From assembly GCA_965644295.1 (NCBI GenBank), contig CBFFRP010000611.1:1-39696 (forward strand): a DNA stretch of 39,696 nucleotides, written 5' to 3'. The translations under genes were made by a program, and so were the position numbers. Positions 8,117 to 28,563 of the stretch are shown piece by piece (position 1 is the stretch's first letter; each line of letters opens with the position of its first letter). Below the pieces are notes generated by a model that was not told the DNA's origin, made no database searches, and saw nothing but the letters and a program-made list of their open reading frames with translations. This stretch comes from Paraphysomonas bandaiensis. Its lineage: Eukaryota > Protista > Chrysophyceae.

Positions 8117-8502
8117 ATATTTGTAAGTTTAACGCATGCGACGTTATAGCGATCAGGAATAAGAAATCTGTACGATTTATTTGTTGTCACTGTCTTGGTA
8201 TAAATGGTAGTCATGGATAACGACAAGTTACGATAATTTATCAACTAATATATATGAATTTGACTATCTTGCTTTATATATTCTGAATTTGCTTAGGCCA
8301 AGTCAGTATTAACAAAACCAGGTAAAGAAATCACAAGTATATTGAAAGCTGTACAGTTTAAAGTGTGTTAGGATTCATCTTAATATTATGATGTTCAATG
8401 AAATATATCATGAACTGAATTAATGATTGTATCTGTTGAAGATACTTCGTCGTCACCATAACGATCGTCATTGTCAGTTATACTTCTAACTATTCCGTTG
8501 TG

Positions 8503-8667
8503 CGGCGACGCACAAGCAGCTTCTGTAGCGTTAAATAGTAGGATAATAGAATTTGTGCTGATTAGTTATGGGTAGAGGTCTAACTAGTAGATCTAGCATT
8601 CAACTAGCCACTATATCGGAACGAGTTTTTAACGCCTATTGCTAAATAAAAAGACATTCAATATTAA
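8503..8667 (+). mobile_element. LINE 3' end, copy C: ~165-bp 5'-truncated insertion with 12-bp TSD
   Basis: Same 3' UTR core; flanked by the direct repeat TATTCCGTTGTG at 8491-8502 and 8668-8679. Confidence 0.88.
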
Positions 8668-9365: not shown

Positions 9366-10844
9366 TGTATGTATGTACAGTATGTATGTATGTATGTATG
9401 TATGTATGTATGTATGTATGTATGTATGTATGTATGTATGTATGTATGTATGTATGTATGTATGTATGTATGTATGTATGTATGTATGTATGTATGTATG
9501 TAGGTATGTATGTATGTATGTAGGTATGTATGTATGTATGTATGTATGTATGTATGTATGTATGTATGTATGTATGTATGTATGTATGTATGTATGTATG
9601 TATGTATGTATGTATGTATGTATGTATGTATGTATGTATGTATGTATGTATGTATGTATGTATGTATGTATGTATGTATGTATGTATGTATGTATGTATG
9701 TATGTATGTATGTATGTATGTATGTATGTATGTATGTATGTATGTATGTATGTATGTATGTATGTATGTATGTATGTATGCAAGTATGTATGTATGTATG
9801 CAAGTATGTATGTATGTATGTATGTATGTATGTATGTATGTATGTATGTATGTATGTATGTATGTATGTATGTATGTATGTATGTATGTATGTATGTATG
9901 TATGTATGTATGTATGTATGTATGTATGTATGTATGTATGTATGTATGTATGTATGTATGTATGTATGTATGTATGTATGTATGTATGTATGTATGTATG
10001 TATGTATGTATGTATGTATGTATGTATGTATGTATGTATGTATGTATGTATGTATGTATGTATGTATGTATGTATGTATGTATGTATGTATGTATGTATG
10101 TATGTATGTATGTATGTATGTATGTATGTATGTATGTATGTATGTATGTATGTATGTATGTATGTATGTATGTATGTATGTATGTATGTATGTATGTATG
10201 TATGTATGTATGTATGTATGTATGTATGTATGTATGTATGTATGTATGTATGTATGTATGTATGTATGTATGTATGTATGTATGTATGTATGTATGTATG
10301 TATGTATGTATGTATGTATGTATGTATGTATGTATGTATGTATGTATGTATGTATGTATGTATGTATGTATGTATGTATGTATGTATGTATGTATGTATG
10401 TATGTATGTATGTATGTATGTATGTATGTATGTATGTATGTATGTATGTATGTATGTATGTATGTATGTATGTATGTATGTATGTATGTATGTATGTATG
10501 TATGTATGTATGTATGTATGTATGTATGTATGTATGTATGTATGTATGTATGTATGTATGTATGTATGTATGTATGTATGTATGTATGTATGTATGTATG
10601 TATGTATGTATGTATGTATGTATGTATGTATGTATGTATGTATGTATGTATGTATGTATGTATGTATGTATGTATGTATGTATGTATGTATGTATGTATG
10701 TATGTATGTATGTATGTATGTATGTATGTATGTATGTATGTATGTATGTATGTATGTATGTATGTATGTATGTATGTATGTATGTATGTATGTATGTATG
10801 TATGTATGTATGTATGTATGTATGTATGTATGTATGTATGTATG

Positions 10845-10875
<31 letters not shown>

Positions 10876-12473
10876 TGTATGTATGTATGTATGTAGGTAT
10901 GTAGGTATGTAGGTATGTATGTAGGTATGTAGGTATGTATGTATGTATGTATGTATGTATGTATGTATGTATGTATGTATGTATGTATGTATGTATGTAT
11001 GTATGTATGTATGTATGTATGTATGTATGTATGTATGTATGTATGTATGTATGTATGTATGTATGTATGTATGTATGTATGTATGTATGTATGTATGTAT
11101 GTATGTATGTATGTATGTATGTATGTATGTATGTATGTATGTATGTATGTATGTATGTATGTATGTATGTATGTATGTATGTATGCAAGTATGTATGTAT
11201 GCAAGTATGTATGTATGTATGTATGTATGTATGTATGTATGTATGTATGTATGTATGTATGTATGTATGTATGTATGTATGTATGTATGTATGTATGTAT
11301 GTATGTATGTATGTATGTATGTATGTATGTATGTATGTATGTATGTATGTATGTATGTATGTATGTATGTATGTATGTATGTATGTATGTATGTATGTAT
11401 GTATGTATGTATGTATGTATGTATGTATGTATGTATGTATGTATGTATGTATGTATGTATGTATGTATGTATGTATGTATGTATGTATGTATGTATGTAT
11501 GTATGTATGTATGTATGTATGTATGTATGTATGTATGTATGTATGTATGTATGTATGTATGTATGTATGTATGTATGTATGTATGTATGTATGTATGTAT
11601 GTATGTATGTATGTATGTATGTATGTATGTATGTATGTATGTATGTATGTATGTATGTATGTATGTATGTATGTATGTATGTATGTATGTATGTATGTAT
11701 GTATGTATGTATGTATGTATGTATGTATGTATGTATGTATGTATGTATGTATGTATGTATGTATGTATGTATGTATGTATGTATGTATGTATGTATGTAT
11801 GTATGTATGTATGTATGTATGTATGTATGTATGTATGTATGTATGTATGTATGTATGTATGTATGTATGTATGTATGTATGTATGTATGTATGTATGTAT
11901 GTATGTATGTATGTATGTATGTATGCAAGTATGTATGTATGTATGCAAGTATGTATGTATGTATGTATGTATGTATGTATGTATGTATGTATGTATGTAT
12001 GTATGTATGTATGTATGTATGTATGTATGTATGTATGTATGTATGTATGTATGTATGTATGTATGTATGTATGTATGTATGTATGTATGTATGTATGTAT
12101 GTATGTATGTATGTATGTATGTATGTATGTATGTATGTATGTATGTATGTATGTATGTATGTATGTATGTATGTATGTATGTATGTATGTATGTATGTAT
12201 GTATGTATGTATGTATGTATGTATGTATGTATGTATGTATGTATGTATGTATGTATGTATGTATGTATGTATGTATGTATGTATGTATGTATGTATGTAT
12301 GTATGTATGTATGTATGTATGTATGTATGTATGTATGTATGTATGTATGTATGTATGTATGTATGTATGTATGTATGTATGTATGTATGTATGTATGTAT
12401 GTATGTATGTATGTATGTATGTATGTATGTATGTATGTATGTATGTATGTATGTATGTATGTATGTATGTATG

Positions 12474-12504
<31 letters not shown>

Positions 12505-12795
12505 GTATGTATGTATGTATGCAAGTATGTATGTATGTATGTATGTATGTATGTATGTATGTATGTATGTATGTATGTATGTATGTATGTATGTATGTAT
12601 GTATGTATGTATGTATGTATGTATGTATGTATGTATGTATGTATGTATGTATGTATGTATGTATGTATGTATGTATGTATGTATGTATGTATGTATGTAT
12701 GTATGTATGTATGTATGTATGTATGTATGTATGTATGTATGTATGTATGTATGTATGTATGTATGTATGTATGTATGTATGTATGTATGTATGTA
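9366..12795 (+). repeat. (TATG)n microsatellite array, ~3.4 kb
   Basis: Near-perfect tetranucleotide repeat with rare TAGG/CAAG/TAAG variants and a 1-nt deletion at ~10874. Confidence 0.99.
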
Positions 12796-12993
12796 TTGTG
12801 AGGGAGAGCGGGTGTGAAAAAAACTTTTTTTTCTCTCTTCTTCAATCTTCTTTGATCGCGATTACAAAACTTGCTCACCTACATTAAACAGTACCATAAA
12901 CCCACAATTACCATGATAAGCACTGCAAATCAAGGTGATTTCTTCTACAATGTGTTGAAGCAACCTTCTCTCACATGTTTGTCATTCGCAGCA
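12796..12993 (+). repeat. Left terminal inverted repeat (198 bp)
   Basis: No mismatch seen by eye against the reverse complement of 16073-16270. Confidence 0.96.
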
Positions 12994-14677
12994 TGTCATC
13001 AGACAGCCAAAACTCTGAAATAGAAGAAGGTCTGTGGGTGCGAGTAAAAATTGTCGCTTTGACTAAATTTCGAGAGGAAGCACAGGCATTCTCTGTAAAT
13101 CGGTCCGAGTTAACTTCTTCGACAGACCAATTAACGATTTGGGTGAGAATTACTGCAATTACTGCTAAAGATGTTTTAATATAACATTTTTTTTAGATTC
13201 CAGGAGGTAATCTTTTTGAAGACGATAGTAATATCTGGCGTGTCAAAGGTCATGCATTCTTGCATGCACTCGTTGAGGGCGTAGCGAGGCAAGCGTATAA
13301 TCAAAAGTTATTGCCACCACTATCAGACTTCAACGACCAACTCAGGATAGACTTCAGCAGAGGTATTACTGTTCGAACTGCAACAAGTTCTGGTATCATT
13401 GGTAATTTCCACATAATCCCTCCCGATGGAGAATTGGACATACCGTTACTTCCCACTAGACGCCAGACAGATCACGATAGGAAGTGTTGTCGGGAAAACG
13501 CTTCCCACTATGTGGTGATTGCTGGTGTCCCGTTCCAAAATTGCCCAGACGATGTGATACTACAGAGACAGCTCAGCTTTGTTGATTCTTCCCTTGCGCT
13601 TGTTAAACATAAACAGAATGATCTTCCCCTCTGTAAATACATGCACTCAAAATATTTCAAAGTTGGCCTGAATCATCGTCCAGGAAATGATATGAACACG
13701 TACTGGTCACCGGCAATGAAAGAAGCCATGACCGAGTGCAGTGAAGAGGGTCAAAGACTCTTCGAGCTTAATCCTCCAAAAAGTATGCAAAGTGGTATCC
13801 GCAAGCAGAGAGGATTTGGTCACGGTGGTCAATCAGGTCTTAAGCTTTCAACCGCCAGTGAACATGATGCGGCGGACACATCGAGTCATTTGGAAGCACA
13901 AAGGAATCGCTTGCATATCGAGCGATGTCGTGCCAAAGCTTGGAGCAAGAAAGATTTGATTTCTGATAGCAAATTGAAAGATCTACTCGAGCTTCCCGAG
14001 GGCAAGAAAGTAAAGAGCTACTCGCAGTTAAGAACATACTTATGTGAATACTTTAGTACCCTAGAAGGTGAAGAACGTGCAGCTGAAGACCCGTTGGAGT
14101 ATGACCCGACACTCGATACATGGGTTCTCAAGTTGGATTGGATGGGTCAAGGCTTCCCAAAATATAGTGACCTCAAGGGGGGTAATAAGCCAATACCTGC
14201 AGCCCGTGAAAATATCATATTCTCGTCGGTTCGAATAGGACCACACCCGCCACCACCACCGCCCCCTGCTCTACCAGCTCCTCCAGGTGTTCCAGCACAA
14301 GGTTGGCCTATCCCAATTGGTGTTCCCCCTGCTGGAAGTAGTGGCCCTTCTTTTGGTGTCCCTTTTCCCCTTCCACCAGACTGTGGACCATCGCCCTACG
14401 GGGTATACCCCCTCCTATTTATCCAACTGGGGGTTTTCCTTTTCAGCAGCAGCTTCCTCCGTATTACCCACAGGGATCTGCTCCTCGGCATTATCCGCAT
14501 CACATGCTGTATGGCTACCCGCCAGAATATTACCACGGCCACAGGGATTTTGATTATGCATCGCGTTATCGCCAACAGCGATTTGCCTGGGGAGAAGGAA
14601 TGCGAAAGGATGAGAGGGGTGAGTGGATAGCATATGAGGCCGAGTATGAAATTCCTTATCCTGCCGACCCTTACTAA
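12993..14677 (+). CDS. Transposon accessory gene of unknown function (2 exons; Pro/Tyr/Gln-rich C-terminus; apparent 1-nt frameshift at C5 run 14408-14412)
   Basis: ATG at 12993 (or in-frame ATG 12975 inside the TIR); phase-0 intron 13143-13196 (GTGAGA...TTTTAG) joins in frame to ORF 13260..; adding one C at 14408-14412 continues PPIYPTGGFPFQQQLPPYYPQ...PADPY* to TAA 14677. Confidence 0.75.
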
Positions 14678-15031
14678 ATAGAACAGATTGCAGTCAATCG
14701 TTATCTGCCGGGTCTCATTTATTATTTATTTCGAATCTTGGTAATTTTTGGATGAATTTAACACATACGCTCCGATGCATCGAAATTTAGGTTTAGACTC
14801 ACTAACCGATTTTCTTTTTTCTTCTTAGTATGCAACTGTATGAACTGATATTTTAAATTCTCCACAAACTTTTCAAAATTTTGTTTTTTTGATTTATTAA
14901 TATTACTTGAATCTATTGCGTATAATTAATCATATTCTATCACGAAGTAGTAGCAAGCATATCACATTCAATCATCAGTACATCTATATTAGTAACTAGT
15001 GAGTAGAGTATAGAGTATAATCTGCAAATGA

Positions 15032-16062
15032 TCAATAGTTACAGGCTTCGCACTGTTCTTTCCAAGTAACGGTAATATCCACTCGATTGAATAAATTGCA
15101 CGCAGTTTCGGCAGTACAGCATGACCACAAAGCTTCATGTAGTTGAGCTGCAAGTGGTTTATATGCGTACATAATTCCCCACTTCTTTCTAATGTGCGCT
15201 TTGGCAAGATGAAATACGGGTTCAATTGGTGAAAAATCATAAGAATAAGGGGGAGAAACACAACCATCACGCCGAATTCTGCACACATATTATAAATATC
15301 TATCTTCACGTGCGTCGAAGCATTATCCATGAGCAGCACACTGCGATCCCCAGGAAAAGGGTTCATGTGGGGAAAGATGTCATGTTCTAGGGCATCTAGA
15401 AATGTATTATGATCAACATTTTCTTCGTGTACAGTAACAGCAAAAACTCCTTCGATAGACATTGCAGCAATGGCACAACAACTAACTTGGGGATTGAAGT
15501 GGCCTATAACATCACCACTCACGAAGGCAGGGTAGCCATGTGGTGAACGCCCATATCGGCGTAGAACTTCTGCCGGCTGGAGATGTGATTCGTCCACAAC
15601 AGCATAGCAGCGAGCTGGAATTTCATCCAATGATCGGGCCAAATTATTCTTATAGTAACGCCTCAAGCCCTCATTTCTGTTGTGGGAAATTCTTTGACAA
15701 ACTTTTACGGTATAGCCCTCAGTGTTCATGGCATGCTTCATTTGGTGCTCCAAGTACGCCACGCCGTACACATTAAAAACCTTTTCGCATAATTCTTCGT
15801 TGGAATAAGTTGAATTTTCTGCCAGCAACTCTTTAACAAAATTGATATGCTCGAGTGAAATGACAGTGTGGTGCGAATGGTGTGAAGACTCTGGTTTAAC
15901 TGATCCAGTGTCCAGATATTTGTCCAACCACCTTCTAACTGTGCTTTGGGACACATCGTATTTCTCGTATATATGATCTAGTGATGCGGCCACAGAATTT
16001 GTGATTTCCAGAGAGTGATCAAACACATCCAAAATTAAAAGACGGAAAGCCTCGGAATACAT
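15032..16062 (-). CDS. IS630/Tc1-like DD34E transposase (apparent 1-nt frameshift at 15249-15253)
   Basis: N-terminal HTH-like YDVSQSTVRRW; catalytic VVDES, LMDNASTH and, after restoring one base, FLPPYSYDFSPIE; 34 residues lie between the second D and the E. Confidence 0.93.
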
Positions 16063-16072
16063 GTAAATATGG

Positions 16073-16269
16073 TGCTGCGAATGACAAACATGTGAGAGAA
16101 GGTTGCTTCAACACATTGTAGAAGAAATCACCTTGATTTGCAGTGCTTATCATGGTAATTGTGGGTTTATGGTACTGTTTAATGTAGGTGAGCAAGTTTT
16201 GTAATCGCGATCAAAGAAGATTGAAGAAGAGAGAAAAAAAAGTTTTTTTCACACCCGCTCTCCCTCACA

Positions 16270-16270
<1 letters not shown>
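16073..16270 (-). repeat. Right terminal inverted repeat (198 bp)
   Basis: Reverse complement of 12796-12993. Confidence 0.96.
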
Positions 16271-16300
<30 letters not shown>

Positions 16301-16406
16301 TGTATGTATGTATGTATGTATGTATGTATGTATGTATGTATGTATGTATGTATGTATGTATGTATGTATGTATGTATGTATGTATGTATGTATGTATGTA
16401 TGTATG
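16271..16406 (+). repeat. (TATG)34, right-hand remainder of the array split by the transposon
   Basis: Perfect TATG units in phase with the left array once the element and one TA are removed. Confidence 0.98.
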
Positions 16407-17798: not shown

Positions 17799-18190
17799 AA
17801 GTGAATGTCTGATCATGTTGCTTATAGGCGTTTAAGATCAGAACTAGTGCTTTACTCTGATATCCTACTAATTAACGGTACAAAAGCTGCTTGTGCGTCA
17901 CCACAAGCACCAAGGTGGCTGCAACAACGCAGTGAGCACGCAGATGTTGATACACCTGACTTCTGCTGACAGGATTTGAGTCTTTAAGTAAGTGTGAGAG
18001 TAGCCCACGGACGTGTAGCGTGTAGCCCTCTTAAGTGTCAAGAGGCGTCATTAATCAGGGGGACGACCGTTGAGTTGGGGGTCCGCGACGTTTAAGGGAG
18101 GGTCAAAGTTATGTAGATGGGAGGATACTGCTCCGAGGGAATGTGAGAAGGTGCGAGGTGGAGGCGTGGAATATCTGGAGGCGCCGCTGA
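17799..18190 (-). mobile_element. LINE 3' end, copy D (minus strand, shortened 3' UTR; 5' boundary approximate)
   Basis: Reverse complement reads CACCTTGGTGCTTGTGGTGACGCACAAGCAGCTTTTGTACCGTTAATTAGTAGGATA...AAACGCCTAT...ATCAGACATTCACT; the minus-strand ORF ends ...NGRPPD*. Confidence 0.75.
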
Positions 18191-18199
18191 CTGCAGTGT

Positions 18200-19315
18200 A
18201 TAAGTTGGACATTAATAGAGCTGGCGGAGGGCGTAAAAGTGTAATAAGAGTAGGGGAATCTTTCAGCATAGGAAGAAACCGGGCGAAAACCAAACACCTG
18301 GCTATGTTCTGACTGCGGATTTAGACTAGACTCACTCAATCACATGTGTCTAGACTGTACAAATGACACCATAACGCAGATAAGGGAGTCTGCATTTCAC
18401 AGCCACAAAAACGCGCTTCTAGAAGAAATGAGAAATCCGGTACTACCCCAATGGACCACCACTGTACTACAGCGGCTCTCCAGCAGGGCCTCGAATCCCT
18501 TCGTTCCACTGGTGGAGAGATTCTGGACGGGTACCATCACAACTGCACAACTCGAGACGGTTTTTGGAGATCACATCCATGAGTCACTGACACCCTAAGG
18601 ACTGCGCAGCATCGAATCAGCGGTCAGCAGATTGCTTCTACCGCTTTTCGCTGCAGCAACGCTAATGATCCAAGATCGAAGTAGACGATACGTTACCCTA
18701 CAGAAAGGACCCCCTAGGCTACTACAGCGACCGCGTCCAAAACACAGACAGAAATGGAAACGCCCAAGGGTGCTAAGATTACTAGGAATCCACAGACGAA
18801 CCGAGACTGGAACACCGCCCACCGCACATATAAACCCCACCAACCATACACAAAGGACCATAGAACCGGACCGCATGAAACCATCAGCGGCGACGCCGTC
18901 TCCGGCAACTCCACCTATGCCTGACGCCCAGACGGTGCACGGCGACAACGCCACATTCCACCACACCATCAACCTCTCAGCACACACATCTAGTGCTCGG
19001 TACACTCAGGACTTTAATGCAGAACCCTGTACCTCAGAGCCTGGCGGAACCTTATCCCAAGGGGAGGCCCCCGGACAACACGCGCCAGTGAGTCCTCAGA
19101 CACACGAGCAGGGCGAAACTCACAAACAACATTAAGAACGGAAGTGGTTGCACCTTGGTGCTTGAGGCGACACACAAGCAGCTTCTGTAGCGCTAAATAG
19201 TAGAATGATTAGTTATGGGTAGAGGTCTAACTAGTATGTCTAGCATTCAACTAGCCGCTAGATCGGAACGAGTTTTTAACGCCTATTGCTAAATGCTAAA
19301 TAAAAAGACTTTCAA
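18200..19315 (+). mobile_element. LINE 3' end, copy E: degraded ORF2 C-terminus with CCHC zinc knuckle plus 3' UTR
   Basis: 18305-18358 translates CSDCGFRLDSLNHMCLDC (CX2CX8HX4C, typical of non-LTR ORF2 C-termini); in-frame stop at 18596-18598, ORF ends 19135; shared 3' UTR at 19135-19315. Confidence 0.82.
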
Positions 19316-27566: not shown

Positions 27567-27907
27567 ATACATACATACATACATACATACATACATACAT
27601 ACATACATACATACATACATACATACATACATACATACATACATACATACATACATACATACATACATACATACATACATACATACATACATACATACAT
27701 ACATACATACATACATACATACATACATACATACATACATACATACATACATACATACATACATACATACATACATACATACATACATACATACATACAT
27801 ACATACATACATACATACATACATACATACATACATACATACATACATACATACATACATACATACATACATACATACATACATACATACATACATACAT
27901 ACATACA

Positions 27908-27938
<31 letters not shown>

Positions 27939-28563
27939 CATACATACATACATACATACATACATACATACATACATACATACATACATACATACATACA
28001 TACATACATACATACATACATACATACATACATACATACATACATACATACATACATACATACATACATACATACATACATACATACATACATACATACA
28101 TACATACATACATACATACATACATACATACATACATACATACATACATACATACATACATACATACATACATACATACATACATACATACATACATACA
28201 TACATACATACATACATACATACATACATACATACATACATACATACATACATACATACATACATACATACATACATACATACATACATACATACATACA
28301 TACATACATACATACATACATACATACATACATACATACATACATACATACATACATACATACATACATACATACATACATACATACATACATACATACA
28401 TACATACATACATACATACATACATACATACATACATACATACATACATACATACATACATACATACATACATACATACATACATACATACATACATACA
28501 TACATACATACATACATACATACATACATACATACATACATACATACATACATACATACATAC
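27567..28563 (-). repeat. (CATA)n = (TATG)n on the minus strand, ~1.0 kb
   Basis: Near-perfect array with one 1-nt deletion at ~27908. Confidence 0.99.

Follow-up and report, generated by a model that had tools for sequence, protein, structure and literature searches.

A two-gene IS630/Tc1-type transposon of Paraphysomonas bandaiensis with a conserved second gene and a partial bias towards (TATG)n arrays

Tc1/mariner and IS630 elements are textbook single-gene transposons and are thought to need their transposase alone. Why, then, does an element of this kind in the chrysophyte Paraphysomonas bandaiensis carry a second gene, and why does it lie inside a tetranucleotide microsatellite? The element is a transposon of 3,475 bp at positions 12796–16270 of a 39,696-nt stretch of DNA (GenBank assembly GCA_965644295.1, contig CBFFRP010000611.1, here C611; the stretch as a whole is called the window). 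An original prediction, made from the letters of the window, had described the transposon and its two convergent genes, one for a DD34E transposase and one, here called ORF2, for a second protein, and had suggested that the family may use TATG arrays as a safe harbour, with the second protein as a targeting, regulatory or anti-silencing factor. We followed this up in the genome assembly (62.56 Mb, 669 contigs), in metagenomic and transcript-derived sequences and in protein profiles and models. The element proves to be an IS630/Tc1-type DD34E transposon of a known kind. What is new is its conserved second gene, its long terminal inverted repeats (TIRs) with an intron-bearing leader and its partial bias towards (TATG)n arrays.

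The two arms of the element, 12794–12993 and 16073–16272, form an inverted repeat of 200 nt with 100% complementarity, composed of a TA and a 198-bp TIR that begins with TTGTGAGG. The left TIR (12796–12993, + strand) and the right TIR (16073–16270, − strand) are bordered by the TA target-site duplications at 12794–12795 and 16271–16272. On the left, Tandem Repeats Finder placed a (TGTA)n array of 857 units at 9366–12796, which up to the duplication spans 9366–12793; on the right, a repeat search found a (TATG)34 array, 16271–16406 when counted from the duplication and 16273–16406 beyond it. Direct reading of the sequence showed that the array is in phase again once the element and one TA are deleted, although, with a single TA per repeat unit, this restoration is unavoidable. 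The two genes converge on an AT-rich spacer of 354 bp (14678–15031), delimited by the sequence and the alignment of copies, and each starts at the inner edge of an identical TIR: the ATG of ORF2 starts on the final base of the left TIR, and that of the transposase lies 11 nt inside the inner edge of the right one. Relatives described below have TIRs of at least 127 bp and at least 156 bp. Repeats internal to the TIR were 7–8-mers only, to which we attach no meaning.

The transposase gene (15032–16062, − strand) encodes 343 amino acids in copies C551, C247, C134 and C241, which carry a run of six G; in the window copy its frame is broken by a run of five G at 15249–15253 (C on the coding strand). 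Residues D157, D246 and E281 are invariant in an alignment of 11 members of the family, and the 34 residues that separate D246 from E281 give the spacing of a DD34E triad. The protein matches Pfam DDE_3 (PF13358) with 68.1 bits against a cut-off of 28.6 and the NCBIfam IS630 profile (NF033545) with 102.1 bits against a cut-off of 100. Scores of the N-terminal helix-turn-helix (HTH) models HTH_23, HTH_32 and HTH_33 fell below their cut-offs; the Pfam mariner model (Transposase_1) and the Tc3 HTH model gave no match, the pogo model DDE_1 reached only E = 0.043, and no solved protein chain, Tc1/mariner transposases included, was matched by sequence. On its triad, TA duplication, TIRs and profile matches, the transposon belongs to the IS630/Tc1/mariner (ITm) group. 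The original prediction was borne out on the size of the element, its perfect TIRs and TA duplication, the in-phase array flanks and the class of its transposase.

A search of the genome with the TIR found 26 ends, 22 at 100% identity and four at 99%, which correspond to 13 elements: 12 with both ends and one that begins at a contig end. All 12 two-ended copies have TA on both sides. Once the 13 copies are aligned and oriented by their interiors, variation among them is limited to 25 positions or indel runs. In an all-against-all BLAST comparison of 4-kb flanks, the only similarities were short dispersed repeats (76–96% identity) and no pair of flanks was collinear, so the 13 loci are independent rather than haplotigs. 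Near-identical copies at unrelated loci, together with family membership and TA duplications, point to cut-and-paste movement, although neither an empty site nor a footprint of excision turned up. The sequences indicate a transposon that is autonomous and recently active. In L051, a short-read contig from a metagenome, the TIR borders a flank that none of the 13 loci has. This site is absent from the assembly and implies that further, possibly polymorphic, insertions exist. An older two-gene copy lies decayed at C375:41280–44137, with a transposase 63–89% identical that contains stop codons and a convergent ORF2 remnant. More distant transposases (32–50% identity) occur on contigs C249, C37 and C219. 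The one at C249:11006–11923 is an open frame of 349 amino acids with 35% identity. The profile search brought up no ORF2 homologue nearby, so this may be a single-gene relative or one whose partner has diverged beyond detection.

Scoring the flanks of every copy for arrays showed that seven of the 13 (C611, C551, C439, C357, C294, C217 and C134) have TATG/TACA arrays on both sides. These arrays are between 22 and about 3,400 bp long, and the copies in them are oriented four one way and three the other. The remaining six lie outside arrays, as does the metagenome site in L051: C241 is in a mini-array of 2.5 units, and five copies are in ordinary sequence. To set these numbers against the genome, exact counts of (TATG)8 (134,928) and (TATG)9 (131,121) were converted to 3,807 perfect runs with a total of about 161,600 units; this amounts to 646 kb of TATG arrays, 1.03% of the genome. 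Such arrays hold about 3.2% of the TA sites of the genome. Seven of 13 copies in arrays is therefore an enrichment of about 17-fold (binomial P = 4.9 × 10−8), and the copies do not fall on TA sites at the frequency expected from TA abundance. The array association that the original prediction had read from one insertion thus holds as a bias, and it is not obligate: array preference is no rule in this family, since 6/13 copies are elsewhere.

The second gene is as much a part of the family as the transposase. Among relatives of the element, an ORF2 homologue convergent to a DDE_3 transposase was found in all eight loci that show the neighbourhood, from six lineages (L039, L041–43 and L046–49), whose transposases are from 63% down to about 27–35% identical to that of the window. 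In L039 the transposase is 63% identical and the convergent neighbour 40% identical to ORF2 (E = 4 × 10−72); the corresponding values are 53% and 32% in L041–43, and 45% and 25% (E = 1 × 10−6) in L046. ORF2 is likewise convergent to a DDE_3 gene in L047, L048 and L049, the transposase of L048 being 35% identical to that of the window element. In each of the three comparisons with paired values ORF2 has diverged faster than the transposase; fast divergence of a gene that is nevertheless always kept suggests that selection acts on the element itself. When 1.84 billion proteins were searched with a profile of the conserved ORF2 region, no more than 18 representative clusters matched. In this genome the same kind of search found ORF2 in the 13 copies and the decayed copy on C375 only, with no free-standing host paralogue. 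These sequences point to a small marine lineage in which a DD34E transposase is paired with a convergent, element-specific ORF2. Linkage that persists down to 35% transposase identity or less suggests an as yet undescribed accessory function in this superfamily.

ORF2 is transcribed and spliced. Its spliced natural product is represented by a database record of 543 amino acids, P0034, which is encoded by two intron-less complementary DNA (cDNA) contigs, L062 and L063, from Joint Genome Institute (JGI) sample 3300017004. Two introns are exactly missing from these contigs. The first, of 57 nt (GT..AG, 12935–12991, + strand), ends one base before the ATG and lies in the part of the 5′ untranslated region (5′UTR) that the left TIR provides, which L062 covers from its first base; the right TIR, next to the transposase gene, has the same 57-nt sequence. 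The second, of 54 nt (GT..AG, 13143–13196, + strand), separates exon 1 (12993–13142, + strand, 50 codons from the ATG) from exon 2 (13197–14677, + strand, ending at a TAA stop). It is also absent from P0022, a product derived from an MMETSP transcript: as in P0034, exon 1 runs directly into exon 2 at this junction, and the sequence has the 13-bp deletion of copy C241. P0022, a product of this very element, is the one close protein; ORF2 relatives are otherwise either identical or no more than 42% identical. A further MMETSP transcript-derived product, P0033, covers the C-terminal part of ORF2. Exon 1 is kept in relatives (43% and 37% identity), where it always ends in IW followed by gt. Thus the convergent, spliced gene of about 540 amino acids in the original prediction stands, with an additional intron inside the TIR, whereas a change of frame near 14400 is not an intron.

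That change of frame is a one-base homopolymer gap, and a second "intron" at this point was rejected: the window has five C at 14408–14412 where the intact copies C439, C297, C128 and C241 have six and read straight through. An uninterrupted ORF2 reading of 472 amino acids is found in these four copies and in 10 of 10 short-read contigs. The homopolymer is six long in all ten of these for ORF2 and in 8/8 short-read contigs for the transposase; the ten ORF2 contigs were fetched with the intact ORF2 protein, so that their C6 follows from selection, which is not the case for the G6 of the transposase. Both frames, of 472 aa and 343 aa, are present in each of the short-read contigs L051 and L052. 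Because the short-read contigs are intact and all frame-breaking homopolymer differences in the assembly are losses from six to five, it is most likely that both frameshifts in the window arose from errors in assembling homopolymers. There are 19 such losses among the copies, at three sites (14408–14412, 15249–15253 and a G run of copy C551, L027, equivalent to 14178–14183), and they do not track the groups that the copies form by single-nucleotide polymorphisms. Besides its 13-bp deletion, copy C241 has one of 8 bp, both outside homopolymers. Homopolymers are probably called too short in this assembly, which would affect gene models throughout the genome.

What ORF2 does is less readily deduced from its protein. 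It consists of a conserved orphan region of about 330 amino acids followed by a variable, disordered tail, which is rich in Pro, Gly and Tyr in the window element and made of other low-complexity sequence in relatives. Neither ORF2 nor any of seven homologues matched a Pfam family, Myb/SANT included, and no DNA-binding domain was recognisable in ORF2. Two AlphaFold runs gave a mean predicted local distance difference test (pLDDT) score of 53 and 63 and were confident only at residues ~215–330. Foldseek found no match to the model in the Protein Data Bank (PDB) below E = 2, and a wide VIA-align search with the models gave best Z scores of 3.1 and 3.7, the Atlas being without a usable match. As the N-terminal two thirds are poorly modelled, we do not claim a new fold. 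PPxY motifs were considered as a feature of the family and rejected: three occur in the tail of the window element and none in six relatives.

Considering these results together, we regard it as probable that the element is an autonomous two-gene IS630/Tc1 transposon, that its array bias is mostly a preference of the transposase and that ORF2 is an accessory factor. Each TIR would supply its gene with a 5′UTR containing the 57-nt intron. The transposase would cut at the TIR ends and integrate at TA, as family membership and the TA duplications suggest. Integration, or the survival of inserts, would be strongly biased to (TATG)n arrays. Most of this bias may come from a transposase that prefers TA steps in deformable DNA of alternating pyrimidines and purines in gene-free promoter gaps, and the purging of insertions elsewhere would add to it. 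TATG is itself such an alternation of pyrimidine and purine. Precedent for a preference of this kind comes from Sleeping Beauty, which favours ATATATAT and bendable DNA and whose K248R mutant inserts in TA-rich simple repeats with an enrichment of about 43-fold relative to random (PMC8934666); since single-residue changes of the transposase give it a simple-repeat preference, a transposase alone can cause such a bias. ORF2, for its part, may serve the propagation of its own element in the manner of the second proteins of Harbinger and MuDR, and its conservation and linkage make an accessory role the most likely one.

Several observations weigh against this account. Insertion sites outside arrays share no evident consensus other than TA, and the TA frequency outside arrays, 0.079, was obtained from 104 kb of non-array flank sequence near copies only. 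At the five two-flanked copies outside arrays, no long open frame reads well across the site, and the long frames nearby are one-sided, a pattern that survival bias also predicts. Finally, cDNA contig L062 includes the whole TIR, preceded by 146 nt of imperfect TACA array, so that some transcripts may begin outside the element. The array at positions 1–146 of both L062 and L063 matches none of the 13 assembled flanks above 90%; it may stem from read-in transcription at a copy missing from the assembly, or the contigs may be chimeric across copies.

If survival alone were at work, insertion would occur at any TA by abundance, array copies would persist as on neutral ground and those in or near the genes of this compact genome would quickly be lost. 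The lack of long frames across the five two-flanked non-array sites fits this explanation. However, the copies are nearly identical, which leaves little time for selection, and six of the 13 have persisted outside arrays. Moreover, a P value above 0.02 would require that under ~10% of non-array TA sites tolerate insertion. We therefore consider survival alone unlikely as the source of the bias, and take purging to be a contributor next to a transposase preference.

A more far-reaching alternative is that this unnamed marine IS630/Tc1 lineage has made ORF2, as a structurally new protein, an obligatory cofactor of transposition, and that ORF2, or the pair of proteins, steers insertion into (TATG)n arrays of promoter gaps, where copies would be harmless to the host and would be transcribed by read-in from neighbouring promoters; we think it quite improbable. 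The narrower proposal of the original prediction, a dedicated satellite-targeting system in which ORF2 binds (TATG)n or its chromatin and tethers the transposition complex, seems to us very doubtful. ORF2 is indeed conserved, strictly linked to the transposase and expressed, and the array enrichment is strong. But ORF2 shows no recognisable DNA-binding domain or fold by Pfam, by structural comparison (best Z 3.7) or by Foldseek (none below E = 2), nearly half of the copies lie outside arrays, and transposase residues alone can create a preference for simple repeats (PMC8934666). In addition, TATG arrays were not seen at the recovered metagenome flanks of relatives, although these flanks are short and the contigs, through their length or variability, do not allow target sites to be defined. 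That the copies or their array flanks are artefacts of assembly duplication, haplotigs or microsatellite mis-joins is scarcely credible: although the assembly is fragmented (669 contigs) with homopolymer errors and arrays are hard to assemble, outside the arrays the flanks have nothing but short dispersed repeats in common, with no collinear pair, exact TA duplications occur at every copy, and the short-read contig L053 and cDNA contig L062 independently join a TIR end to CATA/TACA repeats.

Read as a two-gene transposon with an accessory ORF2 and a transposase-driven bias, the element can be compared with systems already described. It shares with IS630/Tc1 elements (DD34E, DDE_3) the triad, the TA duplication, the TIRs, a transposase of about 340 amino acids and the profile matches, and differs from them by its conserved second gene, by very long 198-bp TIRs with an intron-bearing 5′UTR and by a transposase lacking a Tc3-type HTH match. 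MuDR, the maize Mutator element, has two convergent genes, for a transposase and a protein of unknown function, and ~215-bp TIRs that carry the transcription starts (PMC3440606). The layout of the window element, in which two convergent genes set out from the inner edges of 198-bp TIRs, resembles this by analogy rather than homology: the transposase superfamilies are unrelated (MURA versus DDE_3), the duplication is 9 bp in MuDR and TA here, and one cDNA contig here, L062, begins outside the element. In PIF/Harbinger, transposition requires a faster-evolving second protein, which acts in nuclear import and binds the TIRs (PMC9179366). The pairing of a DDE transposase with a faster-diverging partner is shared, but the Harbinger partner has a Myb/SANT domain where ORF2 has no recognised domain, and superfamily and target site also differ. 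The ciliate TBE/Tec elements combine a DD34E-type transposase with extra genes (PMC7325037); going by their descriptions, they are set apart by three ORFs, with a site-specific recombinase in Tec, and by an ORF2 here that has no Pfam family.

For the array bias, the closest likeness is with the plant elements Micron, MuTAnT and SaTar, TIR elements that target microsatellites (PMC4486113, PMC5907723). Together with the ATATATAT preference of Sleeping Beauty, they share with our element an enrichment in simple repeats with TA steps. The plant elements are Mutator-like, mostly non-autonomous and target (TA)n, whereas the window element appears to be an autonomous IS630/Tc1-type transposon of a stramenopile host, with (TATG)n arrays around only about half of its copies. 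Near-exclusive insertion into microsatellites, as would mark a strictly microsatellite-targeting element, is not what we see here, given the six of 13 copies and the L051 site outside. Microsatellite-biased DNA transposons in plants (PMC4486113, PMC5907723) and two-gene TIR transposons in other superfamilies (PMC9179366) have thus been described already; in the literature we found no paper on such a two-gene IS630/Tc1 layout, nor on TATG arrays in stramenopiles. A 17-fold bias to the array of one tetranucleotide offers a natural case in which target choice by DNA shape can be separated from safe-harbour survival. The element also looks intact, young and expressed, which makes it a candidate genetic tool for marine stramenopiles; to our knowledge, these organisms lack such tools.

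Some minor features of the copies and of the window were also observed. Copy C217 contains a nested non-coding element of 1,033 bp in its spacer (L034:5451–6491, at a point equivalent to window position 14820), with an 8-bp duplication, CTTCTTAG, and inverted ends that begin CAGGGATAGGGAAC; it looks like a hAT-type element. A partial second copy of it adjoins the C357 copy (L029:8563–10000). In the window, TATG-type arrays make up about 11% of the contig, compared with about 1% of the genome, and a second array, (ATAC)n, runs uninterrupted for 1 kb at 27567–28563 of the same 40-kb contig. Three related segments of 50–56 nt at 8501–8550, 17856–17917 and 19151–19206, 86% identical and inverted, flank the array and the element, and may be the ends of a small repeat family with TIRs.

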